Shown here: in pieces, positions 3,601-62,526 of the stretch
Layout of the letters: every line of letters begins with the position of its first letter
Position numbering within the stretch: the first letter of the stretch is position 1
Source: Convolutriloba macropyga
Taxonomy: Eukaryota
Length of the DNA: 64,000 nucleotides
Reading direction: 5' to 3'
Assembly: GCF_964194025.1 (NCBI RefSeq)
Contig: NC_134476.1
Coordinates: 56,110,001 to 56,174,000 of the forward strand
The notes under the pieces: generated by a model
The model's database searches: none
What the model saw: the letters and a program-made list of their open reading frames with translations, nothing else
Told to the model about the DNA's origin: nothing
Made by a program: the position numbers and the translations under genes

Positions 3601-6600
3601 GCTTGTGGAGGAGTAGGAAAGGTCTCCCTTCACTTGGAATAGACTATACATGAATACTGTGAGTTTGAATGTTGAATGAAGGTGGTCAGCAGAAGAGTGT
3701 GGTGGTGTTGAGAGGGTGTGACGAGTCTTCTCCCCAAGAGTTGCGACTGATGGCTATCGAGTGTGCTACCATGTCCCAGTTCTACCACCCCAATGTCCAC
3801 ATGTTACACGGGGTACTCTTCCAGGGACCCACAGTCTACATGTGTCTAGAGGACGCACCTCTCGGAACCCTAGACTCCTATCTCAGGTGAGAGATGAGCA
3901 AACAGAATTTTGTAAACTGCAATCAACAACACTTAACAGCTTCAGTGTGAAATCCTCTTGTGCAGCTTTGCAGCATCCTCAGATGGTGTCTTTAGGGCAA
4001 ATATTTGGCGCAAATTTTTGAATTTTGAGTAAATGGATTTAAAAATTATTTTGGATCCGAGGTAAGATTGCAAACAATCTTTTTTGGAGTTAATTTTTTT
4101 GAGAATTTAATTTGTATATGAGAGCATTTATTATTATTTATTGTATACGAGATGTTTCCATTATCATTTGATGTTTTAGAGCTTGTCTTCATTCTTCAAT
4201 TGAGTTGAATGGAGTGAGCGGAGTTGGAGATGCAGATGGAAAGGACCCTTCTTGTTTCCCAAGTGACCATGGTCTGTCTCAGCTGCAGCTGGTCCACCTA
4301 TTAAGAGGGGTGGCATGTGGAATGCAGTACTTGGCAGAACTAGGATACATTCACAAGGTCGGCTATGATTCAAGTGCATTTTTATATCCATTTTTGTAAC
4401 TGTGCTATGCAGTAGATTTCATTTTTTGGTCAAATCAACTTTTTTAAGGTCAGCCCTATTGCTGTTATTCATATTTTGAATGCTGCTTTTAATTTTGCAG
4501 CGTTCTTTGTTGCTATCAAATGTGAAGATTTGTATCTAAATCTTTGAGTATTTTAGCCTATAGAATTATTTAGTATTTTTTTGAGTGAGATGACAAGTCA
4601 GCTCTTTTTTCAATAATTTTATTCATAAATCAACCTATTTATAAATCCATCTTCCACGAGATTGGTTTTGTGAGACTTGAACAATTAGGATGCGTCACTT
4701 TTTAATTTATCTGCCAATTGTGATGAAATCTTTTGTGATGAGAGTTTATTCCATTTAATTTATCCTCAATTATGGCAGGAGGGAGAATTTAATATGACTG
4801 AAATGACAATTCAGTGATTAGACAAATACATATCTTTTAACAGCAACTGTCAACAGATAACACAATAGTCATTCAAACTTCTATTCAATACAATCTCAGA
4901 TTTTATTTTTGAACAAAATTTCAACGAGTCCTTTTTTATCTAAGAAACGAATAAGCAATTAGGCAGAAGCAATGTTGAAAACTCGTCTATGATAAAAACG
5001 TGTTTTCTTTTTTTTTCGTAATAAATTTGGGCCGCAACTTGCCATGAGTTTTATTCTAAGCCTGGTAAAAGCTGTAGTGACTTTTTGAATGAATTTGGTG
5101 GAATTGAGCGGTGTGACAGACGGCGTGAAATTTAGCTGATGGCTTGTCATTTAACTGAATGATCGGTAAGCGCTAATTCACCCCCAATTTGACAAGAGTC
5201 CATTTTGTCCATTCATTAATTGACCATTCACACTGAGTTTTGAGTCTTTTTGTTCTATATATAGGGGGGCAGTGAGGCGTACAGTTAATGGATTGCATTT
5301 GTGTTTGAGTTTGAAAATATAGTCTTTATATCTGGTGGTATTTGACTGACTGACAATGCTTTTAGCTCCCTCTCTCTCTCTCTCTCTCTCGCTCTACCTC
5401 TCGCCCCTTTTAGTCTATTCAACTGCAATTAACTATATGGCAACCTGCATTCAACCACAACAATCTCTGCACGTACAAACAACAAACAATGCGTCAGTGC
5501 GTCACATAAATACACACCTTAACATACTGTTCAACTTGATTGAAATTGAATGCAATCTAGCCAGTTTGTATTTATTTTTAATGCAAATGTTATCAGACTA
5601 AAAAAACGCAAAAGGGCAATTCTGCTAGCGATCAAAACTTCAACACTGATATGGTATTTAGACGAGAAAACGATACCAATGCTCATTCGTCACCCATCAG
5701 AAAATTCACCTCATTTTTATCCGGTGCAACGAATTCTCGAGAAATCGTTCAGTAACCTAACATGATAGAAAATTTTGCTCTAAATGCGAACTTGGTGTTT
5801 TAAACTTCATTTTCTTCTCTCTTATGGGAGAGAGAGGGGGTATTCCAGTAAAAAAAAAACATTCCATAGCAGTATAAGTAGTTTGTACACACCACCGAAT
5901 TGCGTTGTTTGTATTTGTTTGCTTTTGTTGTTTTGGTGACGTTTACACGAGTGTGTAAAGCAGTTAATAATTAATAGTTATTGACTAGAAGTGGAATTGG
6001 GAAGCAAGTGTGAAGCAGTGGAGGAAGGAATGGACTTAGAGAGGAAGGAAAGAGAGGAGTAAATAAATTGTTTACTCTCTTGTCTTGTTACAACCATCTT
6101 TATTTATGCCTCTTTTGCCACATTTACGATGTTCAACATACAATTTTAATGACTGCTAATCAAAATGTGGGGAGTGGAAATTGTGGAGGCGAAAAGGGGG
6201 ACAGCTTTATTGATGAAAGATTAATCAAAATAAGTGAAATAATTTCTCCTCGCTAAAACAAGTTTCTGAACGCTATGGCTGAGGAGTTGAGTGAAACTAC
6301 TTTAAAAGCGCTTTATTCACATTTAACAGTTGATGATTTATGATTGGAAGGCGTCGAAACAGGAAGCAATATACTTTCTCTTCTTAAAAAGATGGCTAAT
6401 AACAAAAGGAAACAGTTGACTATAGCGAAAGAAGACCAACAGTTAAGGACGGCAATTGATTGACTGATCGACCATAAAAGTGACACTCACGCGAACACAC
6501 TAAGCACATCTTTATTCCAGTACTTATTAATAATTTAGAATGTTGATGAAACTTGTTACCTTCGAGCCATACGTAAGCTTAGACAAGGAGCCTTTTGCAC

Positions 6601-9600
6601 AAGTGAGAAGAATCTAGATTTTTGTTGAAATGCTGGTTGATATGTTGGGTTAAAATGTTGGGTCTCTGACTTAGTGAAAATTTGTTTGTATGTTTCAGGT
6701 GTTGTGTGCCAATAATGTGTTAGTAAGTGGCAGTGGTCTGTGCAAAGTGGGTGGGTTCGAGATGCGGACTCTGTTGGAAGAAGAGGAATTGCAGGGACAC
6801 AGCTACTCAAAGGTACTATTCTCAACATGAACAAGTTAAGTAGACCAGATCCAAATCAAGCACCACTAGCCAAAACTGTGTTCAAATGGAACAATTCCGA
6901 CTGTGATGAAACATTCCAAATTAAATTTTGATTCCAATATATAGCTGCGATGAAGACTAGTATTCAAAGTTTCAATAAATGGCACAAGCTTTTAAATTTA
7001 AATTTTTCTTATTTTCATTTGGTTCAAACATAGTGTTCTAATATTTTTCAGTCGTTTGTTCCAACTTGAAATACGCCTGGACTATTTTCATTTGGAAGTA
7101 ATCAATGTTTCATCGCTACACGAAATAATTCCTCGCAATGTTTCTGCTGTGATGTAAATTGACGTGTAGAATTTATCCACATTGATTTCCCATCACTTTT
7201 TGTAATGCAGCCCTAAATCCAACACTAATCCCAACTAATCCCCACAACACCCATTTTTATGTCTCAAAGGCCCTTTTAAATGAGTTGTTCTGAAGGGGGG
7301 CCTTAATAGCTAATCACCCTACTAATGCCCTCTCCCTCACTCAATTTACTTGTCATCGAACGGCAAGTCAATTTTATCTTCACTTAAAAATAGAAGCTAC
7401 AACTGTGGATCATTCATTTCCTGTTATTTCATTTCACTTGGGATTCGTAAACCAAATTTTTGTTCTCTTATGTCAAAAGGGTTCTTCTCTGTCAAATCTA
7501 GAAACTTTAATCAAGAATTTTGTTTTAACTTTTGCTGGAACAGTCTTGATATTAAAATGTCAGAATCAATCGTGGTCACCTTTAAATGGGGCTTCATTTC
7601 CTTCGCAACCAATTTATGTATTGTTTGCAGGTAGTGGACGTGTTGAGTGGCTGGCTGGCTCCAGAAGTGATCAATTGTCGAAAGTGGAGCAGTAGCAGCG
7701 ATGTGTGGGCATTCGGGGTGCTCGCTTGGGAGACACTTTCCCACTGCCAGAGACCACCTAGTCCAAACCCAGCATTCAATCAACAACAAAACAAGTCCCA
7801 ACTGGTAAAGAGATATCCCTTACTGTGATTAATAGCCTTGTGGAGCCTGTGTTTAAAAATGTTTTTTTTTTCACAAAAAAACTTAGCTGGCAGGTTACCA
7901 TTGGTTGGCAAAATACCAATGAAATTAAGTAGGACAGAAAAAAAAGGGTTTGTTGATGTGAGTTTTTTGTGACAACATAATTGTTTGCTTCTATTAGTTA
8001 CCCTCAAATGACTGTAAATTAGAGTGACAAATACTCAGCTGACTTTATCTCCTTCAATTAAAGTTAGCAAAAATCAATTTGAGGGACGACAGGAAAGGTC
8101 ATTTCTGAGAGTGAGATAAGACACGTGTGATCATAAACTTAATCGATCGCTTGAATGGAAAAAGATCTCCGCTAGTGTGAAAAATGACGTCTTGCGCAAT
8201 TACATGAGGAATGATTAAAAAGCAGATTTGAACTGATGGTCTACGTCATATGGCCGTAGTAAAAACTTCGATGACGAAATAAAAAAACGAACGTACAAGC
8301 CTTGATTCACAATTCGAATTGAACGAACTACTTATAGATAGCACCATCGGCTTTTCACAGTAGGTAAATTGTACATAAAACTTCTCGGAGCACTGAGGAA
8401 AAGCTCTCATCTGCTTTTAGAAAAATAGTGTTGTCAAAACTATCAGGTCCACTAAGAAAAACTGAACATTGAACAACAAAGACTATTTTTTAGAAACAAG
8501 TCACACACAAAATAACAGGCAAAAGCAAAATTACAAAAAATCACTGAAACGTGCAACTGAAACAAAGTTTTTAACACTTTACACTACCATCACTTTTACA
8601 CACAAATCAATTTCATGATTATAATTATGCGACGTCGGAACAAAAACAAAAAGTGAAGGTGCCAATCAAAAATTCTCTAACAGGATTGAAAAACAAATTT
8701 TCAAAGCCAATAATTTTATTATCATTAGACTCGAACTGTTAATTGGATTCATTAGCTCCATTACGCTTTGGAGAATAAATGATAACAGTTGATAATGAAA
8801 TTAAGAAACAGAGTAAGGGCAAAACGATTTCAAAATCAAGCAAAACTTGAAATACTTAACAATTTTTCAAAAAGTCCTGCCCAACAATTTACAACCTTTA
8901 AATAAGATTAAAAGAGATCAAATTGTAAAAAATTGGAGAGCCAGTGAGAAATGTTGTTAGCGGGACTATGTGAGACAACAACGAAGAAAACAGCAACAAC
9001 AAGTTGCTTAAAAAAGCGCGACCGGGTTAATATAATTGCTACAAGTGAGGCAAGTCACGTGTGACCGAAAACTTGCTCACGTGAATGAATAATAAAACTC
9101 GCTCCACTAAGAGTGAAAAATGACGTCACACACGTAATTTTAATGAATTTGCATGAACTAATGAACAAAAAGCAGATTTGAAGTTATTGTGACGTCGTAT
9201 GGTCATATAACAGGACAAGTCCTGACCTAAAATTCAACAAATTCTCATTGACTAAGCACAAAACTAGACTTAGAACGCACACTATAAGCGAATTGGGAAA
9301 ACCATTTAAAAAAATCAGATCAAAGAAAATCAATGTCAATTGCCGCATGTGAACAAAACACCACTAGCGGGGAATTGAAATTTGGTTCAAATAAAGATCT
9401 AGGCCTAGAATGAACTATGAATGGATTGGGAAAACATTTTAGAAAAAAATACGATCCAGAAAATTTAAAAAAACCAGTAAAAATCAAAGTGAGATTGCCG
9501 CATGTGAACAAAAATCACTAAGAAGAAAGCAAATTTTTGTTCAAACACCATTTTCTCACACCACTTTAAAATTTGACCGAAACAATTTCAGGCCGCAAAA

Positions 9601-12600
9601 CTACTCGCTTTTTCGCTCCGCTTCCTATTTCGATGTGAACAAAATCAGTACTCCAATTTGACTTTAGAAATCTTGATAGTGTGTGAACAGATCTTAAAAA
9701 AGACAGCGCCCCATTGAATTTGTAAAAATTCAATGGGCAGCCTTTGAATTGTGAAAAACCAAGAGACGGCCAATAATAGCCTCAGATATCGCTTCGCGGC
9801 TATTAATAAAGCAACTGGAAGATTGCCACAAAATGGCCGCAATAGTTTCGTAGATATGCGGTCTCAAAAAGATTGTAAGACAGACAAAAAATAAACTTTT
9901 TTTTAAATGCTGAGCTGTTGTATTTTAAGCATTTTGCTGATTCTATTAGCTTCCTCTTAAAACTCTCCACTAAGAGTGAAAAATGACGTCACACACGCAA
10001 TTCAATTGAAGTTGCCCGTTTGTTTTTATAAAAAAGTTGCAATTGCTGCATTTTCGGGTTTCAGGTAGCAGATATTGCTGAATATCATTTTGTTTAGAAA
10101 CAGTTGAATTCAAAAGATCATTTGAACTAAATAGTTTGGTCAAATAAAAGAATGAACTGAAAGTGTACCCAAAACTGTTTCCAGAATTATTGAATCTATG
10201 TTTAATTTTAGAAAGGGAAAAGAATTATTTCGAAATTTATCCTACACGTTAACTCTAAATTTGTTATGTCGTTGCCTCCAAAATTATGTCCTTTTCTTTT
10301 GATTCACTTGATAATCATTTAACTTCCATTAGCAATTTCACGTGATCCTTGATTTCCATTTATTCTTAATTTATTCCATAACAAATTGACAATCAAAAGT
10401 TAGAAAAATATATAAAGTCTTGCGGCATTTTATTACTGCTTCGTAAGTTCGAGAACAACGATTGCAGCTTACTGGAGCGTTTTTTAGTACGATGCAAGTT
10501 ATCTTAGATTTTCATTAAACATCATTCTTGAGTTTTTTTGTTTGATTTTATTTGGAGCGTAGCTGGGAACGCGACAGTGATTTTGGTTGATAATCCACAG
10601 TTTACTAGCACAGTTGCTTCAACTCTTTAAGATCAAATATGCTTTCTGCGATAAACAAGACATATGGCCGACAATTGTTTAGCATTTCTGTCTTCTGACA
10701 CAAATCCACAAAATATTTTGACAACACTTTTTACAATAGCAATAAAAACGAGAAACGCTTCCAGGCTATAAACGTGTTAAATTATAGTGTAAACGACAAG
10801 AGCCGTTTTTTTCGGGATAGTTAATATAATCTCTACGGATGGAAAATGTTGTTGGGTGAGAAATTTGTGCATGCATGTTTATTGACATCCGGACTTTGTT
10901 GCATTGTAGTGGTGACATATTAACAAGGTGTGGCTTAGCCTGCAGCCTTTGCTATTTCATGTGAAATGAGAGGAGCAAAGTTGAGATACAGGGATAAGTG
11001 ACAAGTATGAGGTTGGTTTGGCAGAGACTAGTTGATACCGAGTGCATATATTGCTACTTTGTGGGCTGAGTGGTAGAAGAGTGTGGTGGTTGAGCGGTTA
11101 TTTATGGCTTTGAGGGCACACACAGCCCAAAGACATCTCGCTTGACTGCTGTTAGCTATGATCACAAGTTTAGTTTCATGTGTCAGTGGGAGATATAGGC
11201 TGCAAGATGAGCGGAAGAGCGATATAGAGGACTAAAATAACTATGGCATTTGTTTATTGACACTAATTCCAAATCCCCAGCTATTCTTACCCCAAGGGTC
11301 AACTATCAGCTGTTATCTTTGCCAAATTATCTGGTCATACCTTAGCTATATTTGGTGTTTTATCTGTGTAATAAATGTGTGATAACTGCTGTAATAACAT
11401 GTGTGTAATAACTCGTGATTGAACCCGGGTGGGTTAACCTCAATCAAAGGGGCGAATTAGTTGTTGGCTGGGACGGGGCAATTGGCCTTGAGTAGGATAA
11501 TAAACATTGTGGGGGTGTCGAATCATGAATGCAAATTAACCTCAACACTCCAGGGCATGTGTTTCATGTCAGCTTTACTAGAGAATACCTCTGGCACACA
11601 AAGCATTCAAACATACATTCAATGTTGTCTAGTTCAAAAGTCACATTCGAATCAAGAACCAGTTGATAAGGACAAACACCCCGAATACAACGCCTTTAAG
11701 CTTAACTCTGCAGATATCCTGCAGTTCTTCTCCATTACCTGAAGTTGACACCACAGTAATAAATTGGATTCGAACTAAATTGGAAAACAAATAGAAACTC
11801 TATTAAATGCCCAATTTTGCTGGCTATTTGTTGTTGCAAAATTTCTGCAAAACCGGAAATTGCAAAATTTCTGTTGCGAGATTCAGATCAAAATTGTTAA
11901 ACTTAAGAAAACAAAAGAAAAATTATAAATTTGTGTATGAAGAAATACCCATTCCAATACAATTTTGTTCACTTGATGTAGAAGTTGACCAATCGACCTG
12001 TCATTTCTGACCTGTTATTTTAGCAGTGGACCAAGAATAGCGATCCAAATGCACTGCAAGCACCTGCACACCTGTGCATGATTGAGGGTATGTCACCTGT
12101 GCTGTACGAAGCTCTCATGGTGAGAGGGTGCTGGCGATCAGATCGAGCACAGCGCATGAACTTCGCCCAAATTAGAGACCTCCTTGAGAGAGCAATCCGC
12201 AATCCATCTCACCTCCATCAATCTGCAAACAGCAAAAATTCTGCGTCAGCCGTGACAATGGGAACCAGCAGCCCAGTTACCAGTCGAGAACCCATCATCA
12301 ATCCCCCGCAGAAACCACAAACCCAACTTAACAGTCCTGTGACCACCGCAAAGTAAGAAACTTTGAATTTCAAATTTTACTTGTCGATTTGTTTAATAAC
12401 CACCGTCAGCCTCTCGAAGTGTGTTATCCAGGCGCTCTCCTTTTTTTTACCATTCAAAGAATTTGAATTATATTGGGGCGCTATTTTTACGGCTCGAAGA
12501 GGAGTATTTGTGGAGCGTCTTTTTTGATCGATATTTTTTGGAGTGTTTAAAGCAGGTAAAGACAGCGAGAAAAGTATATGTGGAAAAGTTTTGCGCTAAG

Positions 12601-18600: not shown

Positions 18601-20611
18601 ATTTTTTATTGTGTTTTCTATATTTGTCTGTTTTAATGTTCGTCTTGTAGTCTTATGACATATGAATAATGGTTTTGAAGTTTTAAATTTTTTTGTTCAA
18701 AAATGTCATTGTATTTTTGAATTTTTTGTTCTTTTACAGGCTTGTTACCTAGTTTCATTAAGGACAGGTACCATCTGCATTATAGGGGACCAAAAATCGA
18801 TTTGTTTAATTGAAGTTTTATTTGATACTATTTTGAATTTGTTACTAAGTAAATTTCTAAACTTTAAAAAATATGTATTTCAAGTTTTGCCCATAACTCT
18901 TGTTCTTTGTCTATTCTCGGAGTCTCATTAATTTCAGCTCTCATTCGTCTTTTAATGCGACATTAATTACTTTAGTTTAGTGGTTTGGGTTTATAACATC
19001 TTTTTAATTATACACCAATTGTTTTCGAACAGTATGTTAATTTTTGAAAGTTTCGTACCGTTTCCTCTTTTGTTAAACAGTTAAGTAAGATATGGAAGAG
19101 GGGCGTTGAAACATTGTGTGCAAAAGCACATTACCAAGCCTTCTTGTTCATTTTAACCTGGTCGAACTGTTGGCAATATTTCAGAAACGTGCTCTGAAGT
19201 ATAATTGCCTTTTAAATTCCTTAATTGCTACCTAATTATGCAAGAATGATCCCTGGAACACAGAAATGAGAGCAGAGCTAATAATTTCAGTAAATTATCT
19301 GATAGTTTCTAAAACAAAGAAATGTAACAGATTATATAAAAAGAAAGATTAAACAACTTACTTCGGTGAAAATGCGAGCTCATTACATTAAAACTTCTGT
19401 CTTCTGTTTTAAAGTTTTCATAATTTCTTCAATCCGTTTTGCTTAAAGTCAAATTATTTCATTCCTCCTTCATTCCTCCCATTTATGTATCATTTCCTGT
19501 TTTACATTGCATTCACGAGTTTCATCATTGTTTTTGTATTTGTTAGATTTCTTTAAACAATTAATTCACACCTTTGATCGTATTTATTCTTGTGATCAAT
19601 CTACGCGTTTGATCAGTCAATAGCTCCGTGACTATGAAGAACAGCTACACAATTGATTGTTGAAACCGATTTAATTAATTCCTCAGATAACAATATGCCA
19701 CAGGCCTAAAAGTGTCTTCAATTGCGCCTTATCGTTGAAATGGACTGAAAACAAGGCCGTGAAAATGTCATCTACGCAATAGAACGAGTGTGAATGAAAA
19801 ATTGTGCTGTAAAGTTGAAGATAGTGCATCAATTTTCATATATCAAACTGCATATAGGAATTTATAAATTTTCTGAAAAAGTGGATTTTGGTATTAGAGT
19901 TCAACAATAAGACACAATTTTCTAGCATTGTTACAAAGGATCATCGCCTCCGGTATGGCTTGCGTAACTGATGATTTGAAGAACAGTTTTTGACTATTCA
20001 CTATCGTACATAAATGACATTGAAATTGATTGACATTTTCCCTTGAATAAAATCCTATTCAGTAACCTCACCTAATATTTACACGCGTGATAATTCAAAA
20101 GTGATTAGATAGTTCACAGTTGAGATTTGTTTGCTTTTTGTTATGAAAAATTATACCCTACAGTGGAGAGGCAGGAAAGCCATTGTTCTTAGGTAATAGG
20201 CGATTAGTTAAGAACAGGGAAATAGTTAGATAATGATACTGCTTCGGGTTAGCCGAACAGAGAAAATGGTTGCGTGTTCTTTTTCCATAGGAAGATGGGT
20301 TGAATGGGCTCTCTTTGCTACATTTGATTTTTGGTCCGGAAATTTGGCTCATTTCCTAAATGTTGGGAAAAGACCTCCTCGAAGAGAGTTATACTTCCTG
20401 AAAGTGAGCTGTCTTCTATCGTTCTATCACGTGATGCTGAAGTGATGTTTTAATAGAGCAATCGACTATTTATGAAAACATGTTAGATTCTGGGTATCTA
20501 CAATACTGGATTAGTGATTGTTTGTTATGATTATGAGTGTTGTTTAGGATCAGTAGAAGCTACTCCCCCGTTGGAAGTAATGCGGGTGTCACTTCTGTTA
20601 CACATACTATC

Positions 20612-20643
<32 letters not shown>

Positions 20644-21261
20644 AACATACCCAAACAGACTTCACATCAACAGCAACAACAGATGGACACCGCTGATCAG
20701 TCCCCAGTGAGTGATTGCCCAGACACCCCCGACCTCTTTTCTTACCCAGTACAACAATGGCTCGTGTCTCTCAACTTGCAACAGTACACACCCCTCTTCA
20801 CACAAGCCGACTTTCTCACTATCGGAGACTTGTTTGATTCGACGGCGCTGAGACCGTACTTGACGACGTTACTGATGGTCGTCAATAGCCAAGACCAACA
20901 GCACCAAGGCAATCCCTCTAGTCAACAATCTCCAGAGCTAACTGCAGCCGCTTCGAACGCCCTCGAGTGCTTAAGCCAAGCGTTTAATCACATCGGCGTG
21001 TCTTCAGGCAAACATCGCAGACACCTCTTGACCAGTTTGCAGTCGATAGTTGATGCAATAAGTGCAGAAAACACTGCCAAAGCCCAGCCTGCAATCTCTC
21101 CCAGCAACGACTACAGTAACATGTACCCACAACAACCCCAAAACAACCAACAAAATTTTGACCAGTCACAAAAAGCAGAAAGTTACCCACACTCAAACAA
21201 TACACAGCAAGTGAAGCAAATGAATTTGACAAAAGAAAGCGCTGTTCATGTTATTATGTAA
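271..21261 (+). CDS. Eph: Eph-family receptor (intracellular half: juxtamembrane, pseudokinase, SAM, PDZ-type tail); multi-exon, 5' part lies outside the window
   Basis: Colinear exons give Eph-like motifs: [15 protein letters not shown] (cf. YIDPFTYEDP..EFAKEI), [79 protein letters not shown], then a SAM domain. Splice phases match at most junctions. Confidence 0.9.
2818..2946 (+). CDS. Eph: Eph exon B (probable): low-complexity insert before the kinase N-lobe
   Basis: atttcag acceptor ending at 2817; open in phase 1 ([43 protein letters not shown]); donor A|gttagt at 2947; higher GC than its flanks. No homology motif. Confidence 0.55.
3617..3886 (+). CDS. Eph: Eph exon C: kinase N-lobe (beta3, alphaC, hinge); 5' boundary uncertain
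   Basis: [65 protein letters not shown] aligns to Eph VAIKTLK..FLSEASIMGQFDHPNV..GSLDSFLR; donor AG|gtgaga at 3887, phase 2. Confidence 0.8.
4180..4357 (+). CDS. Eph: Eph exon D: kinase insert, alphaE, start of catalytic loop
   Basis: ttttag acceptor ending at 4179, phase 2 matches exon C; ...[28 protein letters not shown]; donor AAG|gtcggc at 4358. Confidence 0.88.
6699..6812 (+). CDS. Eph: Eph exon E: catalytic loop and activation segment (absent from the ORF track)
   Basis: tgtttcag acceptor ending at 6698; 114 nt, phase 0-0; [38 protein letters not shown] aligns to [24 protein letters not shown]..Y; donor AAG|gtacta. Confidence 0.88.
7631..7804 (+). CDS. Eph: Eph exon F: APE motif and alphaF
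   Basis: tttgcag acceptor ending at 7630; [42 protein letters not shown]; donor CTG|gtaaag; 174 nt, phase 0-0. Confidence 0.9.
8160..10000. repeat. Intronic repeat-derived segment with internal dispersed direct repeats
   Basis: CTCC(A/G)CTA..GTGAAAAATGACGTC at ~8167, ~9103 and ~9965; AAAAAGCAGATTTGAA at ~8217 and ~9166; TTGCCGCATGTGAACAAAA at ~9340 and ~9495. Confidence 0.6.
12024..12352 (+). CDS. Eph: Eph exon G: end of kinase C-lobe and linker
   Basis: ttttag|cag NAGNAG acceptor; [38 protein letters not shown]; donor AA|gtaaga at 12353, phase 2. Confidence 0.88.
14140..14330 (-). repeat. Inverted, diverged copy of the 9425-9615 repeat
   Basis: Reverse complement reads ...CATTTAGAAAAAAAG..ATTGCCGCAGGTGAACAAAA..AAGCAAATTTTTGTTC..GCCGCAAATCTACT, colinear with 9425-9615. 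Confidence 0.7.
17583..17675. repeat. ~42-bp tandem duplication
   Basis: TGTGAATGAGTGTAA..TGATTT.AAAGGCTGATGTAACT occurs twice in tandem. Confidence 0.75.
17881..18286. mobile_element. Foldback/MITE-like element with ~145-bp imperfect inverted arms
   Basis: 17881-18028 (TTTTAGTCAACATAAATT...AAGCAGC) is reverse-complementary to 18142-18286 (GCTGCAT...AATTTATGTTGACTAAAA). No clear TSD. Confidence 0.7.
20548..21261 (+). CDS. Eph: Eph terminal exon region: polyQ, SAM domain, hydrophobic C-terminus; 5' boundary and frame uncertain
   Basis: ORF 20683-21261 has [26 protein letters not shown] and [23 protein letters not shown] (SAM signature), ending VHVIM*; tgtttag acceptor ends at 20547. Confidence 0.8.
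20611..20643 (+). repeat. (CAA)11 microsatellite
   Basis: 11 consecutive CAA units just upstream of the SAM-coding ORF. Confidence 0.95.
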
Positions 21262-23099: not shown

Positions 23100-26000
23100 A
23101 CCGGGACAAGATTAACTTGCAGACGGACGAGCAACCCGAACAGCGTCCGTACGACGGCGGAGAGTACAATCAATCTGTACCGCAGATCTTCAAAGAAAAA
23201 CCGAGCAGTTTAATAGTAACCCATAGGATTGGTTTCGCGGACTGCACAAACGTTACCGGTCTTGAGGTGCTGACAGGGTGGCGTCTGCAACTACAATAAC
23301 GGTTCAGAGCAGACACATACTTCTTGAGCCAGTGCATTGGCATGGAGATGCTGGCTAGCGTACCCGTTGCGATTATTGAATTTGTCGACTGCTTACGATG
23401 AGTGAACACCAAAGATTGACGGAAATCTGGTTGTTCGATTACCAAGTAGATAACGCTCGCATGTTACTGCGCCGCGACTCAGTTGAACATATTTGGCTTT
23501 AGCAGGCGTTTCCGGACCCGTGTTTCTTGCGTAATGCACTACATAAAATCTGGTGTTCAAAATTTCATACGTGAGGCAAGGCTTATTGAGAATACGATAG
23601 AGCTACAAACTTGTATAAAGCTCTTAAAGATACAAAGAAAACTTTCCTCAGATGCATGCTTGGTGGGACAAACCTGGCGGAATAAACATCCACTTGCTAC
23701 GTTTATGCTCAAATTTGGAGACAATTATTACGATAGCCCATTTTCAATGCGCTCACAGAGCTCATTTTTGGCTGCAATGAAGTGGACCACTATTTGACTT
23801 AATCTTACCTGGCATACACCGTTGGAGGGCAGTACTCTTTAGGACAATTCTCTTTAGAACCCGCTATTTGTGAAAAATGGAGACTGATTCGCGAGTTACT
23901 AATTTGGGTGGTTTGCAAGGATTGGTTGAAAAATTTTTGCTAGAGAAGAAATGGAACTTTCTGCAATAGTTGCAGTTTGACTTGTTGGAACGCAATGAGG
24001 AATGTAGTTTAATGGGAATAACAATATTGTAGTTTTTACTGCCAGTAAACAATTCAACTTCGTGCAATTTTACACGCATATGCCACATGAAACAGTTTAA
24101 CGCATATGAAACGTGTATTTTTTGCCATTGGGAGTTTCATTTCAAATTCAACCTCAACAAGTGGTTTGATGGAGCGATTGAGCATATGAGATCCTTAAAA
24201 CTGAAAAACTATGGAACGGAGCGATGCTGCTACTCCAGTTCACGAGTTTTTGTTTGGCGTTGAATCCAAAACAAAATATTGGAGATGGCGTTTGCAATTA
24301 TCAAACTCGTTGTCATCTTTTAAGCTACCGTCAACGTTGTTGTAATTTTGTGAGAAGTTACGGGACGGAGTGGTCACACAATTTTATCAGACAAAAATAA
24401 TCTAACACTTTGTTCCAGGAACTTTGGGGATAAGGCCAACGATGTGGTGGAGTGAACACATGAAACAGTTTAACGCATATGAAACGTGTATTTTTTGCCA
24501 TTGGGACTTTCATTTCAAATTCAACCTCAACAAGTGGTTTGATGGAGCGATTGAGCATATGAGATCCTTAAAACTGAAAAACTATGGAACGGAGCGATGC
24601 TGCTACTCCAGCTCACGAGTTTTTGTTTGGCGTTGAATCCAAAACAAAATATTGGAGATGGCGTTTGCAATTATCAAACTCGTTGTCATCTTTTAAGCTA
24701 CCGTCAACGTTGTTGTAATTTTGTGAGAAGTTACGGGACGGAGTGGTCACACAATTTTATCAGACAAAAATAATCTAACACTTTGTTCCAGGAACTTTGG
24801 GGATAAGGCCAACGAAGTGGTGGAGTGAACACATGAAACAGTTTAACGCATATGAAACGTGTATTTTTTGCCATTGGGAGTTTCATTTCAAATTCAACCT
24901 CAACAAGTGGTTTGATGGAGCGATTCAGCATATGAGATCCTTAAAACTGAAAAACTATGGAACGGAGCGATGCTGCTACTCCAGTTCACGAGTTTTTGTT
25001 TGGCGTTGAATCCAAAACAAAATATTGGAGATGGCGTTTGCAATTATCAAACTCGTTGTCATCTTTTAAGCTACCGTCAACGTTGTTGTAATTTTGTGAG
25101 AAGTTACGGGACGGAGTGGTCACACAATTTTATCAGACAAAAATAATCTAACACTTTGTTCCAGGAACTTTGGGGATAAGGCCAACGATGTGGTGGAGTG
25201 AACATAACACCATTTGGTTACAACGCAAAAGTTAATTTCATCAACGATGGCAATGTTTGATACGGAAGAGAATTGTTTAGTTCTCAAGAACTCAGGACCT
25301 CTCAGCTAACTACTAGACCGTAAAAATTCCAAACGGGCCAGGATCGGCGTTAATTATCAAAATCGTTTCCTTTGGTCAAGACTGCTGTTCTTCAGATTTT
25401 CAATTTCAAAAAAATGTGATGCTTGTTAATTGAATTAGACTTTTACAGAACAAGGATACTGTTTGTCAAAGTGCCCTACTAAAAATGACGGCACTAAATT
25501 TGTCCCGAGGGAAATTAACAAACATGTTGCGTAAGATGTGATTGTGGTCCTGAAAAGCAAATTCTAGGTTCCGTGATCTTCCCGACTTTGAGGGCGCAGG
25601 TCAGAATCAATGAAAAGAATCTGTCAATCTTGTTCTTAGCTACATCATCAACCTAATTTTGTCCATTGACAGACCCAAATTGTTTCAAAACCAAAATAAT
25701 CACGTAGAGTCAACTGTGCAACAATAGCAGTTGATTGTAGACGACTTTTGACCCGAGAGGAAGGAGAAAGCGGTGTATTACACTCTTTGTAATGTAATTT
25801 ATTTACTTGTCCATTGATGTAAGTCTGGATTAAAATGAGCCGTTCACCCAATGCTTTTAATTGATTGAATGCGGAAAAGTGTTTATTGTGTGATTCAATG
25901 ATCTCATTAGCCCGCAAAGTTTTGACATCATACGTTTTTCCAATCGGCACTGTACTGTTTTTTGGCAGACTGACAAATTCACTTGATCACTTTCGATACA

Positions 26001-35276: not shown

Positions 35277-38066
35277 TTAAAACAGATAGGTTTTAAGAGC
35301 TTTACGGAAGCAAAGTTCAGTGGGGATTGACTTCAAAGAGGCTGGTAGTTTATTCCATTCCGTTGGTCCTATGTATCTGAAACTACGTCTATCACAAGCA
35401 CTGCGGGTCTTCGGAACTTCCAAGTTGTACACATAGTTCATTCTCGTAACGCGAGTAGTTCGTTTCAATAGCTCCTGTAGATATAATGGACTGTCCGATG
35501 GCTTGTGGATAGCTCTGTGAACAAAAAGCAACAGCTTGAAAAGACATCTTTGCTTGATTGGAAGCCAGTGCAATTGTCGAATATATGCTGACGTTGGTGT
35601 TCCGGCGTGTAAACAGAAAATACAGCTGGCCGCTACATTCATTACACGCTGGAGTTTTGAAATGAGCTTAGTCGGAAGAGATACATAAAGGATATTGCAA
35701 TAATCAAGGCGTGAGATCACCTGCAGTCTAATCAGCTCAATTAAAATGGTCCTTTCAAGGTGGTGTTTGACAGAGAAAATCTTGCGAAGGTTAAAAAAGC
35801 AGGAAGACACAACACGATTGATCTGCTTCTCCATCAAGAGATTCTGATCGAATTGAACATCCAGGAGTTTAACAGACAAAGATAATCCAGTTTCACAAGG
35901 TATAGAAAGCGGTGGTACAGTCACGGTTCCTTTGTCAGGTTTTTTAAGCCATAAAAACTCACTCTTGTCTTTATTTAACTTCAGACGGAAACTTGAAAAG
36001 AAAGTAGTAATTTGGTTCATGGTATCGTCAAAATTTTGTTGACTAGTGAACAGAAAATATAGAACTGTGTCATCGGCATAGATGTGGAAACCGATGTTCC
36101 TTTGTAACAATAGATCTTCAAGTGGCAGCAGATAGCAACAAAACGAAACGGGTCCTAGGATGGAACCTTGGGGAACACCATACAAAACATCGGATTCGTC
36201 AGAAAAGACACCATCAAGGTAAACACACTGAGTACGTCCTATCAGCTAACTCTCTAGCATCTTCAAGGCGTCAGATCGGACACCGAGACGCATCTCCAAA
36301 ACACGAAGTAACAAATGATGTTCAATCGAATCAAAAGCTGCAGAAAGATCTAGACCCACGTAAAGAAGAGAAAATCCCGAGTCCAAGTAGCCCAATAAAT
36401 CATTAGAGATTCTGGTCAGGGCTGTCTCAGTAGAGTGTCTTCGGCGATAAGCGCTCTGAAACTTGCCATACAAAGAATTAACCTCCAAGTATGTTTTCAA
36501 CTGCTCGAATAAAACTAATTCTAACACTTTGGACAGAAATAGGAGATTAGTAACTGGTCGATAATTGTTCAAGTTCTCCGGATCCAGCGAACGCTTTTTT
36601 ATCAAAGGGACAACGAAGCCTTTTTTCAGGTTCTCGGGGAAACGCGCTGATCTAACCGTCATATTAATAAGAGATAACAAAGAGTCGCAAAAATGCAAAG
36701 AAGCTGTCTTGAATAGCGATGGTGGCATCGGCTCTTTTGGACAACTAGAATTCGATACTTGGTTGACATAATGAAGTAGAGTTTCGCTGCTTATTGTCAT
36801 AAAAGAATCAAGTTGAGAAGTAGGCGACAGAAAATAAGTGGGAAAGTCTGACGTAGGAATTGATTCAACCAACTTCTTAACCTTGGCTAGAAAGAAACTA
36901 TTGAAACAATTCGCCAATTCCTTCGCTGATCCATGAGTTTTTGGTAAACAACGGTGATTTTCTCCAAGCAAAGAAGCGAGCGCTTTAAACTTGAGCTTCT
37001 TGCACGTGCTGGAAATGGTTGAGCTAATGTACTCGCCTTTTTTGACTAATAACAGGCGATAGTACTCATCAGTTGCAAGCGTAAATGACAAAAGTGAGTC
37101 ACTACTTTTAGACTTCCTAAATGCGCGCTCACATTTCCTCTTCTATCTCTTCTGAAATTTCAACTCGTCGTCAAAATAGGGACAATTGTGTGACGTGAAC
37201 CACTTGGTGCGTTTCGGAATTACTCGATCTAAAGCTTTTTCGATAGCAAATAGAAACGCACTCCAAGCAGAATCTACAGCCTGGAACGTGTCTTCAAAAT
37301 GCAGAAATTGAATAAATGAATCAATGCAAAACAATTTCCAACGCCGAAACGCAATAAGTTGCCTCCTCTTCTCCGCAACCCAGGGCACAGAGACACAGAA
37401 CGATATGACATAATGGTCTGATGTTAGCAAGTTATCAGCAACAAGATTGCTTACTGTAAGTGATGATGTCGCTGCTACATGATCGAGGATATTTCCTGCA
37501 GTGTGTGTGGGAACGTTCACAAACTGTTCAAGACAGTGTTCTTCTAGCCATGACAACCAGAGTCTTTCTGATGGAGCGCCAGTGCCGAGATGAATGTTGA
37601 TATCTCCCAAGACAATGATTTTCTCGTACAACACAATAATGTCTTCCATGAAGACAGAAATGGTGTCCAAAAACACAGTGATGTTAGACCCAGGCACTCT
37701 GTAAACACTAACAGCAGCAATACTTGTGTTGTTAAGGCCTAGTTCAAGAAGAACAAGTTCACATGCATCGTTGAATACATCTTTCTTCAGAGTACATACA
37801 ATGTCTTCATGATAAAATAAGCAAATGCCGCCACCTGGTCTAGCCAGACGGGGACAACTACAGTACAGGTACTTTGGAGGACAGCATTGTTGTAATAGAA
37901 AGCAATCAGAACTGTTATCAATAATCCAAGTTTCAGTGACTAACATTGCCTGACAGTCCTTCGCAAGAATGGAAGAATGTAATTGACTTGTTTTGTTATG
38001 GATTGATCGCGAATTAACTAGAGAGAGAGTGAGAAAGCTTTTAACAGAGACATGGGCAGCTTTCAC
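35277..38066 (-). pseudogene. LINE ORF2 (AP endonuclease plus reverse transcriptase) with two in-frame TAG stops
   Basis: NSRSI, VTETW, GDINIH, SDH (endonuclease); NYRPV, DLSAAFD, GVPQGSILGP, YADDT, LHWLP (L2-type RT). The three track ORFs share one frame, broken by TAG at 37143-37145 and 36246-36248. Confidence 0.9.
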
Positions 38067-38081
38067 GATGGTCGTAGATAG

Positions 38082-38903
38082 TCAATGTATTCTTAAGGAT
38101 CGCAGCCAGGATCTAGCTTCTCCATTTAGACGGTACCGATCAAATATCACATTTTCTGGCCAGAAATCAGGAGAGTCGACGGCTGAGTATTGGAAATCAA
38201 AAACGCAGTGATACGATCTAGTTCTGGCTTCGTGACCACTTAGCTCTCGAATATGCAGTAGTGGAGTATTATTTTCATTGCAGAATGCTCTAATCCGTTC
38301 AGCATCAACTTCTTTGTTGAGTCGACCAATGTATACATGTCGCCGCGGAGGAGGCTTCGGGGGTGCAAAAGCAGTTCCGCCAGACCTGTTAGTGCCAAAA
38401 ACAGGTTTCTTCTTTCTCGGAATAACAACTTGAAACTCGGATAGTTCAGGCTGAGTGCCTGGGTCCACATGAGCAGCATTGCTAGCTTGCAAATCTTCAG
38501 AATCAGTACGCGATCGCTTGACTCGACTCGACGATTCAGATGAGGTACTTTCCGATCGTTTGTCATCAACCAACTGGGGAGGCCAGCCTCCAGTTCTCGT
38601 TTTTTTAGAAACGTTTGCAAAATTTCGCGGTTTAATGGTTTTCTTGACAACCGACTTCAAATCTGCCACATCCGCGCATAGTGTGTCCAGTCTCTTCAGC
38701 CTTTCCAAGACATTGGCAAGCATATCAGTAACAGACAGAGAAGCACACGATTTGAATTTCCAATGGATGCCGCACGAAATGGGGTCGCCATCAATCTTTA
38801 CGTTGAGACAGTCATAGTGAACAGATTTGACGCCACAAATGTCACAGTCAAAGTATTTACTATCGTCTATCACAGTAGTGCATAAGTCACAAGATTTGGA
38901 CAT
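38082..38903 (-). CDS. LINE ORF1: PHD-like finger, coiled coil, RRM-like domain
   Basis: CDLC..CDICG..HYDC..W.FKSC zinc ligands; LERLKRLDTLCADVADLK; HVYIGRLNKEVDAERIRAF. Confidence 0.8.
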   Translation of the reverse strand: MSKSCDLCTTVIDDSKYFDCDICGVKSVHYDCLNVKIDGDPISCGIHWKFKSCASLSVTDMLANVLERLKRLDTLCADVADLKSVVKKTIKPRNFANVSKKTRTGGWPPQLVDDKRSESTSSESSSRVKRSRTDSEDLQASNAAHVDPGTQPELSEFQVVIPRKKKPVFGTNRSGGTAFAPPKPPPRRHVYIGRLNKEVDAERIRAFCNENNTPLLHIRELSGHEARTRSYHCVFDFQYSAVDSPDFWPENVIFDRYRLNGEARSWLRSLRIH

Positions 38904-44946: not shown

Positions 44947-46200
44947 TAGTAGTAGTAGTAGTAAAAGACTTGAATTACCTTTAAGAGGATGTACAGTAAA
45001 ACAAATAATACTATAATAAGGTGCAGTACATAAATTTTATTTAAAAAGGTCCAGCAGCAGGTTGTTTATTTTATAAAAGTCCAGCAGCAGGTTGTGAATT
45101 GTGGTTTGTCGGGAAAATTTCGACTTGAAAAAATTAATACTGATATTCAGGAGATCGGCAGCGTCGTTTACCAGTCTCTCAACACGGAAGAAAAAATATT
45201 TTTCGGTGAGTCGTTTTCTCGATCTCGTAAGGACCAGGCGTTCCAGATTCTGCGCTCGTAAGTTAACGGATTTTTTTTTCAATTTTGAAGTAATCATCGA
45301 AACTAATGCAGTTCTTTTCATTCACTATTGCCAGAAGAAATCGAAGATCACGTTCAATGAGTTGATAACTGATCGGCAACGAATGAGACTTCTGTAATAA
45401 CTTTTCATAGTTATCACAACCGAAACACCAACGAAGTCCATGATAATACAAATTTTCAAGCTTCCGAAGTTCACAAATATCAGGGTACCAAGCAGGGTAA
45501 CCGTACAATAACACAGAGATAACACATGCTTTGTATAGATTGAATTTAACTCCAGAGGAAAGATTTGAAGGAACACTATGCTTCAAATAATTTAGAGCTC
45601 TACAAGCTTTGACCAATTTGATCTTTAAATGAGCTCCCCACTTGAGTGAACTAGATACTTCAACACCCAGGTCGCTGACTTGTTCGAGCCAAGATAGTTC
45701 GTCGTTTCCGATAAACAAGGCGTCGGTGGATGTCCTGTTGAAATATAGGTAGCCACTCTTCTGAGTTTTGAAAGAAAGTGAATTACAATAAGACCGTAAT
45801 CTAAGAGCACAAAGATCGTGTTGAACAGATTGTACGCAAGAATTGTTTTGGCATACAAGTTTGGCATCATCGTCAAAGCAGAACAAATTTGAAAAATCAG
45901 GAACTTCATGCATGTCATCAATGGAAATCAAAAATAGAATAGGTCTCAACACACTGCCTTGCGGCACACCACTAGAGATAGGTAACCAATGCGACAAAAT
46001 GTTACTAATTTTAACTCTTTGTTTCCTATCTTCAAGATAAGAGGCAATAAGGACCACGAAATTTTCGTCAAAACCAAAGTTAGTCGGCTTCACGAGCAGA
46101 TAGGGGTGATCAACTGAATCGATTAAATTTTTTTCTTGAAACAATATTGTCCAAATTGTGTTCCCGGAAATTTATGAAAAATGACGGCTAAACCAATAAA
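44947..46200 (-). mobile_element. 5'-truncated CR1-like LINE, defective RT fragment
   Basis: ORF 45263-46144: SYLEDRKQRV, GVPQGSVLRPILF, FDDDAKL (degenerate FADD), DLGV; short (TAC)n tail at ~44948-44963. Confidence 0.8.
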
Positions 46201-58844: not shown

Positions 58845-61300
58845 TGAAGATTGAATTAAGCATCAGATCACACTGACAAGTTTTCCAAATTATTTACAGA
58901 TTCAAAAAATAAACATTAAATTTAATTTTGTAACAGTTTATAGAATTTTTGTAAAGATGTCAAGTTTAGAAAGTGACTACAATAAAGAATATGGTCGATT
59001 GATGAAAGAGTTCTTTCGCAAAGTCTGCACACACGCATAGGTTTTCACATAGGTTTCACACATTGGTAACAACCTTCCATACAGCAAAAATTATTGTGCA
59101 GTCCATTGGCATAGATTTTGGCAATTATTCTCCGGTGTTTTGGCGGGCAGTCTTTTAATCCATGTATATCATGAATCATCAATTTGTTTAAAAAGCATTG
59201 TTGTTGATTTGTATTTGCTTACTCCGCACCAACTTTTCCAAAAACGGCTTCTATTTTGCTGTAATGTTGTTTTATTTCGATTTCAAAAAGTTCATCGAAG
59301 TACGTCTCTAATCCGTAAATTGAGACTGGAAAACCAATTGAATTGAAGAGTTGTTGTGCTGAGTTGAAGTTGACCTTCTGTAGATTTAGTTTTTGGTTTA
59401 TTGAAGCTGCTGACTGATAAGCTTTGTTCATTAAATGCTTTAGATGATGACTGGGAGATAACCTGCTTGAAAATATGACACCTAGATAACAAAAGGTGTT
59501 AGTAAATTCGACTTCTTATTTCGATATATAGAATTTTTCATCAATAGCTAGACGGCCACTTCTTCTAAATTTTATGCATTTTGTTTTGTTTACATTAATT
59601 TTCAAATAGTTCCTGTTACAATACGTGTTCAGATTATTCAAACTTTGTTGTAGTTGGCATTGGCTATGGCTCCCAAGTACTAAGTAATCAGCGTAAAATA
59701 TAACATCTAGAGCCTTGCATTTCAACTTAAAATATAAGTCAGCTATGAATAAACTAAATAAGAGTGGTGAGAGTTTGTCTCCTTGTGCTACTCCTGATTT
59801 CTGTTCAATCTCATTTGACAAGAATTCTCCATCAAGGATCTGCTGGAAGTTGCATTTTAGCACTGATTGTATTGTGTGTAGCATCTTCCCATGGAGCCCA
59901 TTTTTTATCAGTTTTGTAAGCTGCAGGTTCCTATTAACGAAATCGAAAGCTTTTTCGTAGTCAATGAAGCAGGCATAGTATTTGCCATTGCAGCTCAAGT
60001 TATGCTTGATTGAAAGTTTTTTTTTCAAGTGCGAAAATGCCTCGATTGTGGACAGTTTGCGTCTGAAACCATATTGACTTGATGGTAAAATTCGATTTCG
60101 CTCGACCCATATTTGCAAACGCTGGTAAATGATACCCGTAGACAAATTGTACATGCAATAAAACAGACTAATGCCTCTGTAGGATTTTGGTTCTGTTTTG
60201 CTCCCTTTGCCTTTGTAGTGGTTTAATATATGATAACTTCCAAATTCGGTAAGTGCTTGATATATTGTCTCTAAAGCGGTTTTTGGTGTAAAATATGCTA
60301 CAATTTTAATTAGACTGAATTCTTTGATCTCCACTGCTAATAACTTATTGTTCTGATGAAGAACAATGCATGTAATTCTTAATTGTTTACTCAGTGCAAT
60401 TGCTAAGCCGCTTTGCGCCTGCCGCTTCCCGTTTTTTTGCCTTTGTGCAGAAGCATGTGAAACCAGGGATTTCAACTGAATTTAAACTGAATGTTTCTGT
60501 TAAAAGTAAGATATCGTATGCAATTGCTTCACTGGTGCACGTTGAGAATGTCCCCTTAGCACCTTCCACGTTTCATAAACAAATTGTTAGTCAAGATCCT
60601 GTTTTCAACAATTTGATTCCCTTTAATTTTGTACTTGGTGGAAGGATTCAGCAGTCTTTTCTCTTTCAATTCTGCTACCATTTTCGTTCTATTTTCTCGT
60701 TTGGTTTTTGTTAGATGGGGTTGTATAAAACCGTACTTGAATCGTTCGTTTTCTTTTAAGTTCTTTGCTTTCTTTAGAAGGTCCCATTTCATTTTTTCTA
60801 TCTCGCACTTTATTCGAAGCAGCTGTCTGCCTTCTGTGTTTTGTTTGCAATTCTTTGACATTCAAATTTTTTCTTTACTTTCAGGGACGATTGTCAGATG
60901 CTTCAGTGTTCTCGCTGTCAAGCTTTGTCCCGAGAAGAACCAGGTTCTTTGAGCACTTTTTCTGTTCAAACTGTTCTTGTTTTACGCCACTGACTTCTTC
61001 GGCTAAGCTCAGCTTCGATGGGACTGCATTAGATATGGACTGGTTTGTCTCTTTCATCTTATCTAGGGACTGGGTTACTTCTAGTTTTTCTGAGGACTTC
61101 TCGTAGCTTTCTATTTGCTTCTTCGGCTTCTTAATTTCTTTGGCTGCACAGAAACCGCAAGTGAAATCTAACAATTCCGTTTGTGCTTTCATTTCTAGAG
61201 TGTACACGCGGATATCGGTCCACATTCCGCAGTCATTTTGACATTCTACTGTTACGTGATAGCCTTTATTCGCCGGCATTTGCGCCTATGGAACTGATAA
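58845..61300 (-). mobile_element. RTE/RTEX-like LINE, copy c: PHD-type ORF1, endonuclease and RT with an internal deletion
   Basis: ORF1 CQNDCGMW..FTCGFC (60881-61279); endonuclease LTETF; RT SYRGISL, QYGFR, FIDYEKAFD, GVAQGDKLSPLLF, YADY (59516-60475); endonuclease fused directly to RT near 60240. Confidence 0.85.
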
Positions 61301-62417: not shown

Positions 62418-62420
62418 CTT

Positions 62421-62526
62421 ATGATATTACTGTACCCAAGTTCAGTTTCGCCCAAGTTCAGTTTCGCCCAAGTTCGCCCATTTTTGATGTTACTTTACCC
62501 AAGTTCAGTTTCGCCCAAGTTCAGTT
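62421..62526. repeat. 17-bp tandem repeat (CCCAAGTTCAGTTTCGC-type) in two blocks
   Basis: CCCAAGTTC occurs 5 times; both blocks are preceded by TGAT(A/G)TTACT(G/T)TA. Confidence 0.85.

Follow-up and report, generated by a model that had tools for sequence, protein, structure and literature searches.

A predicted Eph-type receptor pseudokinase in the acoel Convolutriloba macropyga and the expanded gene family to which it belongs

What does a gene encode when its product has the layout of an Eph receptor and all three residues by which kinase activity is usually recognized have been replaced? The question is raised by a 64,000-nucleotide stretch of the genome of the acoel Convolutriloba macropyga (contig NC_134476.1, positions 56,110,001 to 56,174,000 of the forward strand; hereafter the window), in which exons between positions 305 and 21261 encode an Eph-type juxtamembrane segment, a kinase-like domain, an IRNP linker, and a SAM domain, with canonical ag and gt borders. 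A preliminary description of this DNA had proposed a single kinase-dead Eph receptor, apparently outside vertebrates and possibly of independent origin, whose preserved fold would serve as a non-catalytic scaffold or co-receptor. We put the probability at about 0.72 that the window carries the part of a working gene that encodes the intracellular half of an Eph-type receptor pseudokinase, and we argue that the gene is working because amino-acid change is low against saturated synonymous change. The best reading of what is new here is an independent, family-wide origin of Eph receptor pseudokinases, in which the window gene would be one member of an old and expanded family.

Architecture of the gene and its kinase-like domain

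The kinase-like domain was aligned with canonical Ephs (from a horseshoe crab, a nematode, and a fish, plus a metagenome protein) and with FAK, ACK, and TNK1. By the sequence definition, a pseudokinase has lost at least one of the β3 lysine, the HRD aspartate, and the DFG aspartate; in the window gene all three are replaced, by arginine, valine, and glycine, respectively. This agrees with the preliminary description, whose quoted peptides are all present in one consistent series of reading frames. In the first kinase exon, K1, VAIK has become VVLR (within VVVLR), so that the lysine described earlier as absent from β3 is indeed lost, by substitution with arginine and not by deletion of the position; the glutamate of helix αC is kept (AIECATM). 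HRD reads HKV (Asp to Val) across the junction of exons K2 and K3. Within K3, LAARN reads LCANN (within VLCANN), with its asparagine kept, and DFG reads GFE (within KVGGFE), with Asp changed to Gly and Gly to Glu. In the Gly-rich loop, encoded by the exon at 2818-2946, DGYSSD stands in place of the canonical GGEFG, and the segment LDGYSSD retains one of the three glycines of GxGxxG. The motifs of the fold are kept, as had been described: the gene retains the catalytic-loop His and Asn, the Phe of DFG, WLAPE with its APE, SDVWAFG, the αF helix, and CW..R..F. A HMMER alignment of K3 to LAARNILV..CKVGDFG of PTK6 yields the same residue states, and EphA7 reads GYVHR where K2 ends in HK. From these motif states we infer that the domain would not transfer phosphate.

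All exons lie on the plus strand. The juxtamembrane exon (305-601), whose splice borders were read from the sequence, ends in a phase-1 donor (G/gtgagt), and the exon at 2818-2946, equivalent to β1, the Gly-rich loop, and β2, has a phase-1 acceptor and donor (ag/CT...A/gttagt) and aligns with the beginning of the K1 exon in the relatives. K1 (3682-3886) begins at a phase-1 acceptor and encodes β3, αC, QFYHPNV, and the hinge. It is followed by K2 (4180-4357), which encodes a 26-residue insert after αD, then αE and the final HK before a phase-0 gt donor, and by K3 (6699-6812; ag/GTG...AAG/gt), which encodes the catalytic loop, KVGGFE, and the start of the activation segment. K4 (7631-7804) supplies WLAPE, SDVWAFGV, αF, and the start of an insert before αG, and K5 (12024-12352) supplies αH to αI and the SAM linker AIRNPSHL, ending in a phase-2 donor (AA/gtaaga) that is conserved in the gene of a relative, L015. 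The last exon (20578-21261, acceptor uncertain) encodes a poly-N/Q tract, a SAM domain with a 36-residue insert, and the C terminus ...KESAVHVIM, with the stop codon at 21259-21261; it contains a (CAA)n microsatellite at 20602-20653 whose length in contigs of public DNA runs is not that of the assembly. From the juxtamembrane exon through K5, seven exons join to 474 residues without a stop and with consistent intron phases, and the SAM reading frame is open over 192 codons, its final eight residues being the same in L015. The Pfam family PK_Tyr_Ser-Thr is matched successively by K1 (24-93, E 3.6e-7), K2 (97-126), K3 (128-156), and K4 (169-206, E 1.1e-11).

The exons listed in the preliminary description are thus real, with some corrections. 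Its first kinase exon contains sequence that is there, and K1 most likely spans 3682-3886 rather than 3690-3887; the exon with the degenerate Gly-rich loop had been overlooked. K3, said to be absent from the open reading frame (ORF) track, sits inside an ORF of 46 amino acids and is therefore missing only from lists made with the default minimum of 60 amino acids. A three-frame scan of the introns for an alternative exon supplying HRD or DFG, whose use in transcripts had been named as a refuting case, found none; the two chance pattern matches, one of them a DFG, both lie beside stops. Matches of K3 to "Tako8" WD-repeat entries of the PDB were rejected as repeat-summed noise. Two segments of the window gene, the 26-residue insert between αD and αE (4180-4270) and a lengthened stretch between αF and αG (7757-7804/12024-12080), occur neither in canonical Ephs nor in the paralogue on chromosome 8. 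Eph kinases are noted for a short D-E connection (PMC8662651).

Several lines of evidence place the gene in the Eph family, as had been proposed, and outside vertebrates, the acoel host belonging to Xenacoelomorpha. The only PDB matches of K1 at E<=0.001 are EphA7 chains. For P0001, an N-lobe fragment from the relative that carries L015, the 43 best PDB matches are all Eph receptors (E 8e-16 to 2e-10), with other kinases following from 8e-9. All 38 PDB matches of K5 at E<=0.01 are likewise Eph receptors, its AIRNPSHL aligning to LIRNPNSL of EphA4, and K4 matches tyrosine kinases. The last exon scores above the Pfam cut-offs for SAM_2 (28.9 bits) and SAM_1 (25.5 bits), and its hydrophobic C terminus, identical in L015, resembles a PDZ-type ligand and may act as one. 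The juxtamembrane motif is recognizable as FVDPTYYDD (compared with YxDPxTYEDP); the first of its tyrosines, at which Eph autophosphorylation begins, has become Phe in each of the nine family members aligned, and the second is Tyr, Phe, or Cys. Upstream of the window, a transmembrane exon lies at -174 to -25 relative to the window start, with a helix 76% identical to that of L015; matches to EphA2_TM are weak (18.3 bits for the juxtamembrane exon, and 21.8 bits), below the cut-off. An Ephrin_rec_like exon at -11.3 kb scores 27.7 bits against a cut-off of 23.1 bits (31.4 bits in L015), and FN3 exons upstream were recovered by tblastn (Pfam fn3 in L015, 20.5 bits, below the cut-off). The order of domains, in an Eph layout, is a tentative, divergent ligand-binding-like region, a Cys-rich/Ephrin_rec_like region, FN3, and the transmembrane helix upstream of the window, followed by the juxtamembrane segment to the C terminus inside it.

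Related genes in the genome and elsewhere

The genome (1,175,981,408 bases in 4,694 scaffolds) was searched with a probe made of K1 and K2 and with a profile of exon K3. Catalytic-loop exons of this type number 17, on chromosomes 3, 4 (three), 6 (three), 7, 8, 9 (two), 11 (two), 12, and 16, and on two unplaced scaffolds. Every one of them reads V-L/I-x-x-x-N (one with T) and K/R-[IV]-x-G-F-[D/E/S], and HRD or DFG is found in 0 of 17. The splice acceptor lies directly before the valine in 13 of the 15 exons for which it was read; at the chromosome-8 locus and the chromosome-6 locus at 24.61 Mb the exons are fused and HKV is contiguous in the DNA. In all, about 15 Eph-like genes were found in the genome, every one with the catalytic loss, so that the kinase-dead receptor of the preliminary description is not alone. 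An acidic residue, Asp or Glu, follows GF in nearly all members, and both the β3 lysine and the αC glutamate are retained in most paralogues. As an internal control, a MuSK/ROR-like receptor kinase of the same genome keeps GSGAFG, VAVK, HRDLATRN, and DFG. This control gene (G000:C9:16203322-16206135; L050:322-3135) is one uninterrupted ORF of 937 codons on the same chromosome as the window gene, which is unusual in this intron-rich genome in being free of introns. The chromosome-8 paralogue is represented in RefSeq by XP_075252525.1, "ephrin type-B receptor 4-like [Convolutriloba macropyga]", found in the 90%-identity cluster of a paralogue fragment; the name of at least this one paralogue is an automatic annotation, and the genes are in that sense already catalogued.

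No canonical Eph was found in the genome with Ephrin_lbd, EphA2_TM, the K1-K2 probe, the catalytic-loop profile, or a juxtamembrane profile. The juxtamembrane matches fall at known loci of the family, save one at noise level (chromosome 3, 13.4 Mb, E 6.7), and the best Ephrin_lbd match is 39 bits. For the ephrin family itself (Pfam PF00812), an exon-wise six-frame search, of low sensitivity for divergent ligands, produced nothing at E<=0.01. It is about an even bet, on these sequence comparisons, that acoels run an Eph-type system of some 15 genes with no member capable of phosphotransfer and with no recognizable ephrin or active Eph.

Gene fragments with the same features occur in relatives, in three European Nucleotide Archive (ENA) holobiont assemblies and one draft genome from NCBI. 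The K1 peptide is 62-68% identical to P0001-P0003, the conserved part of K2 is 71-90% identical to its relatives, and against L015 the identity is 85% for K3, 74% for K4, and 44-56% for the juxtamembrane region (tblastn). A tree that includes canonical Ephs and outgroups places the 12 acoel sequences in a single clade (support 100/99) on a long branch of 0.71 inside the Eph group, which, with the acoel clade, is separate from FAK, ACK, and TNK1 at 100/99; a pair of vertebrate EphB5 sequences and the arthropod and nematode Ephs stand apart from the acoel clade. In the tree made before canonical Ephs and outgroups were added, the window gene groups with L015, L016, and L039 (100/98), and the chromosome-4 paralogue groups with L040, L041, and L042 (94/92). 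Because the HKV/GFD state is present in both branches across species, it predates both the duplication that produced the two branches and the split of the species. The HKV/GF(D/E) state, common to all Eph-like genes found in the genome and to the relatives of both branches elsewhere, is therefore old, and on this comparison the catalytic loss predates the large expansion of the family; the window gene would not be a new event in itself, and only its Lys-to-Arg change and the decay of its Gly-rich loop would be more recent. In its own branch the loop is intact in P0002 (LGAGSMG) and L016 (GSGNMG) and decayed in L015 (DGPDYG) and the window gene, and at the β3 position one species has Lys and three have Arg. 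This looks like an erosion of the nucleotide pocket that went on after catalysis was lost.

Full-length annotated relatives were sought by sequence in large collections. A search of K1 against 1.84 billion representatives returned only eight short fragments and three spurious repeat proteins, P0001 found three fragments in a 5.8-billion set, and an exact look-up of six ORFs of the window gave no match. In L016, from relative species 2, a second Eph-type SAM exon (3839-3925) precedes the K1 exon of the related gene by 6 kb, in the same orientation, suggesting tandem Eph-like genes there. A frog protein, P0027 ("ephrin type-B receptor 5-like" of Dendropsophus ebraccatus), has VCIR for VAIK, HRN for HRD, and a gap at DFG; this may reflect either a further kinase-dead Eph of vertebrates, distinct from EphA10 and EphB6, or a gene model of poor quality.

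Selection, transcription, and competing explanations

Over 409 codons, the window gene and L015 differ by a dN of 0.27, with dS saturated (maximum-likelihood estimate 3.3), which puts the ratio at about 0.08. Among the exons, dN is smallest in K3 (0.116), and identity per kinase exon is 59-85% while synonymous sites are saturated. L016 and L039, compared over 138 codons, have a dN of 0.08, again with dS saturated. The terminal branch of the window gene, at 0.16-0.17, is not longer than that of L015. Low amino-acid change against saturated synonymous change (a ratio of about 0.03-0.15) indicates purifying selection, in keeping with the earlier proposal that the fold is preserved by selection. 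The family is transcribed, because two fragments of its type were found among marine metatranscriptome sequences: P0015 (source "merc", ERR1712226_635308) is 80% identical to the chromosome-8 paralogue, joins K1 and K2, and carries HKV and GFD, and a second such fragment, P0006, is of the chromosome-4 type. We take the "merc" label to denote the Tara Oceans metatranscriptome catalogue.

Several points weigh against the window gene being a working receptor pseudokinase of this kind. Its splice junctions and its expression are predictions from the DNA. Its inactivity is read from motifs, and because the acidic residue after GF is nearly invariant and most paralogues keep both the β3 lysine and the αC glutamate, nucleotide binding or unusual chemistry could still occur in the family. 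The ectodomain, which lies beyond the window, was reconstructed in part, and the paralogue P0016, too divergent to serve as a guide, recovered the Cys-rich exon only. An exon located 15.7 kb before the window matches Ephrin_lbd at 19.6 bits (E 0.0011), short of the Pfam cut-off of 27 bits, so that the ligand-binding domain of this receptor is shown only tentatively; the exon has weak matches, in the same order, to the ligand-binding exons of paralogues, four of which score 29-39 bits for Ephrin_lbd. The absence of a canonical Eph and of an ephrin is drawn from exon-by-exon searches of limited sensitivity. Finally, in the reference the last junction breaks the frame, since the K5 donor is of phase 2 and the acceptors in the SAM frame are only of phase 0. 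The public DNA runs of the organism number four, all from one study, and contigs of two of them, X1 and X3, which come from one sample, span 20400-20671 with a net gain of four letters in the (CAA)n tract over the assembly, a figure that allows for a 1-nt deletion at 20492 in X3. With these four nucleotides, the phase-2 acceptor at 20578 enters the SAM frame directly. The assembly was made from an amplified ultra-low-input HiFi library (published genome note), and we therefore think it more likely that the frame break reflects an assembly or allelic length difference than that the gene is dead; a frameshifted allele without the SAM domain could nevertheless exist. Across 20430-21120, contigs of the public runs and the assembly differ at 17 single positions in 900 bp, some of them in the SAM exon, which fits high heterozygosity.

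We consider it unlikely that the locus is a decaying pseudogene, a dead Eph-like copy that looks intact by chance. Such a copy would explain why the reference offers no in-frame phase-2 acceptor for the SAM exon and why the Gly-rich loop and β3 lysine are more decayed than in the relatives of species 2 and 3, and the transcription of this particular gene is itself only predicted. Against this stand 474 codons free of stops with canonical splice sites throughout, an open SAM frame with a conserved end, a dN/dS ratio of about 0.08 with well-conserved kinase exons, a terminal branch that is not lengthened, and a repeat variant that removes the frame problem. The chances seem slimmer still that the acoel HKV/GFD domain is an atypical active kinase in which other residues catalyze, for example the acidic residue that lies two positions beyond the missing DFG aspartate. 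The near-invariance of that residue, the retention of the catalytic-loop Asn and His and of the K of CK[IV], and the β3 Lys and αC Glu of most paralogues would suit such an enzyme, and human EphA10 (GFG) and EphB6 still bind ATP (PMC8454701). However, the position of the catalytic base is Val in every member read, with no acidic substitute, neighboring positions of the loop vary freely, and across the family the tyrosines that Ephs autophosphorylate in the juxtamembrane segment have been replaced by Phe or vary among Tyr, Phe, and Cys. For the window gene in particular atypical catalysis is unlikely because the β3 Lys, which is Arg, and the Gly loop, reduced to one glycine, are gone as well.

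The preliminary description also entertained a non-catalytic co-receptor. In such a role the product would modulate a catalytically active Eph present in the cell along with it, as has been suggested of EphB6 and EphA10. The analogy with the vertebrate Eph pseudokinases (PMC8454701, PMC13519141) and the presence of clustering surfaces in the SAM domain and ectodomain speak for it, but no active partner was found in the genome: the catalytic-loop exons are of the HKV/GF[D/E/S] type in 17 of 17 cases, every Eph-like match of the K1-K2 probe is of this type, the juxtamembrane matches, apart from the single one at noise level, fall at loci of the family, and no Ephrin_lbd match is strong (39 bits at best). 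This role is accordingly rated very unlikely. Orthology with vertebrate EphA10 or EphB6, with a shared loss, deserves almost no credence. The same three positions are changed and EphA10 shares the Asp-to-Gly change of DFG (GFG), yet the organism is an acoel, both vertebrate genes arose within gnathostome radiations (PMC6993872), and the monophyletic acoel clade excludes the EphB5 pair and the arthropod and nematode Ephs in a tree that did not include EphA10 and EphB6 themselves. The independent origin suggested at the outset is thus upheld.

If the window gene encodes a working receptor pseudokinase, its kinase-like domain would be a catalytically inert folded scaffold, and the ectodomain and SAM domain would cluster the receptor and so bring partners together. 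Among the likely partners, PDZ proteins would bind the ...HVIM tail, and SH2 adaptors could be recruited if cytoplasmic tyrosine kinases phosphorylate the tyrosines that remain in the juxtamembrane region or activation segment. Because no active Eph is visible as a partner, we propose that signaling by the family may be independent of kinase activity or dependent on non-Eph kinases.

The rest of the window, from 21.3 to 64 kb, contains no other host gene that we could see, and putative retrotransposon ORFs fill the region downstream of the Eph gene. At 24087-25146, a unit of ~373 bp is present in three tandem copies, and in each of them one and the same pair of ORFs overlaps on both strands (an example is MKQFNAYETCIFCHWEFHFKFNLNKWFDGAIEHMRSLKLKNYGTERCCYSSSRVFVWR). 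ORFs at 35277-38903, 45263-46144, 59516-60475, and 62006-62455 (minus strand) resemble by eye the reverse-transcriptase/endonuclease genes of non-LTR (long terminal repeat) retrotransposons and are putatively assigned to them. Elsewhere in the genome, a 33.5-kb unplaced scaffold (G000:C315, loci L053-L056) carries COX1 with 11 in-frame TGA codons and internal repeats of about 1.2-1.5 kb. Its COX1 codons (AGA as Ser, ATA as Met, AAA as Lys, TGA as Trp) indicate the invertebrate mitochondrial code, and ARAGORN in mitochondrial mode predicts only 3-4 tRNAs on it. A search for mollusc haemocyanin gave a negative result. The published mitochondrial genome of C. macropyga is 15.47 kb (genome note), and this scaffold could represent a recent nuclear copy, a concatemer, or an assembly error.

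Comparison with known receptors

According to a survey of the family, VAIK, HRD, and DFG are conserved in Eph kinases all the way from sponges to humans, and kinase-dead Ephs go back no further than jawed vertebrates; the survey refers in passing to invertebrate isoforms with altered kinase activity (PMC6993872), and it makes no mention of Xenacoelomorpha, acoels, Xenoturbella, Hofstenia, or Symsagittifera. Another survey speculates on catalytically null Eph-like factors in non-bilaterians (PMC6485061). A full-text literature search for acoels or Xenacoelomorpha with Eph or ephrin gave nothing relevant, and the kinase-dead state is undescribed in the papers searched. If the family-wide reading is right, a single loss of the catalytic residues would have preceded the radiation of the family, purifying selection would have maintained the fold since then, and acoels would be a natural case in which Eph-type contact signaling either does entirely without kinase activity or relies on non-Eph kinases. 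They would make it testable how much of Eph function (adhesion, clustering, scaffolding, reverse signaling) is independent of the kinase with no active Eph to confound the result, and gene knock-down works in the related acoel Hofstenia. The natural variants, in which the Gly-rich loop and β3 lysine are kept in some members and lost in others, could help to define what a dead kinase fold must keep.

The closest sequence family is that of the canonical invertebrate Ephs (such as VAB-1 and, from arthropods and nematodes, P0021 and P0030), which have the same domain order; the full-length acoel paralogue P0016 is 34-35% identical to such Ephs over the kinase region (E 1e-43 to 1e-50). VAB-1 of Caenorhabditis elegans has genetically defined kinase-independent functions. 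The canonical genes keep GxGxxG, VAIK, HRD, and DFG, as seen in the alignment and in PMC6993872, and are usually single-copy, whereas the acoel genes have lost these motifs, sit on a long branch, and have multiplied. The receptors HER3, PTK7/CCK4, RYK, ROR1/2, and STYK1 are likewise single-pass proteins whose kinase-like domains lack catalytic residues and act by allostery or scaffolding (PMC13519141), but they belong to other families with other ectodomains and work beside active related kinases; the MuSK/ROR-like receptor of C. macropyga is fully canonical.

Another close parallel is with vertebrate EphA10 and EphB6, which share the Eph architecture, have the β3 Lys, HRD Asp, and DFG Asp substituted, retain the fold motifs, SAM domain, and juxtamembrane region, and are presumed to act as scaffolds or signaling hubs (PMC8454701). 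In the human proteins the DFG motif reads RLG in EphB6 and GFG in EphA10, and both bind ATP and act as signaling hubs (PMC8454701). The acoel sequences differ in that HRD reads HKV, an acidic residue follows GF, and the first juxtamembrane tyrosine is Phe throughout. EphA10 and EphB6 are two pseudokinases among twelve active members, while in the acoel the loss extends over a family of about 15 genes, has an independent origin, and is accompanied by no active Eph partner or ephrin detected in the genome. A whole expanded Eph repertoire of a bilaterian lineage would thus be without catalytic residues and yet conserved across species, a more radical state than that of the vertebrate cases.

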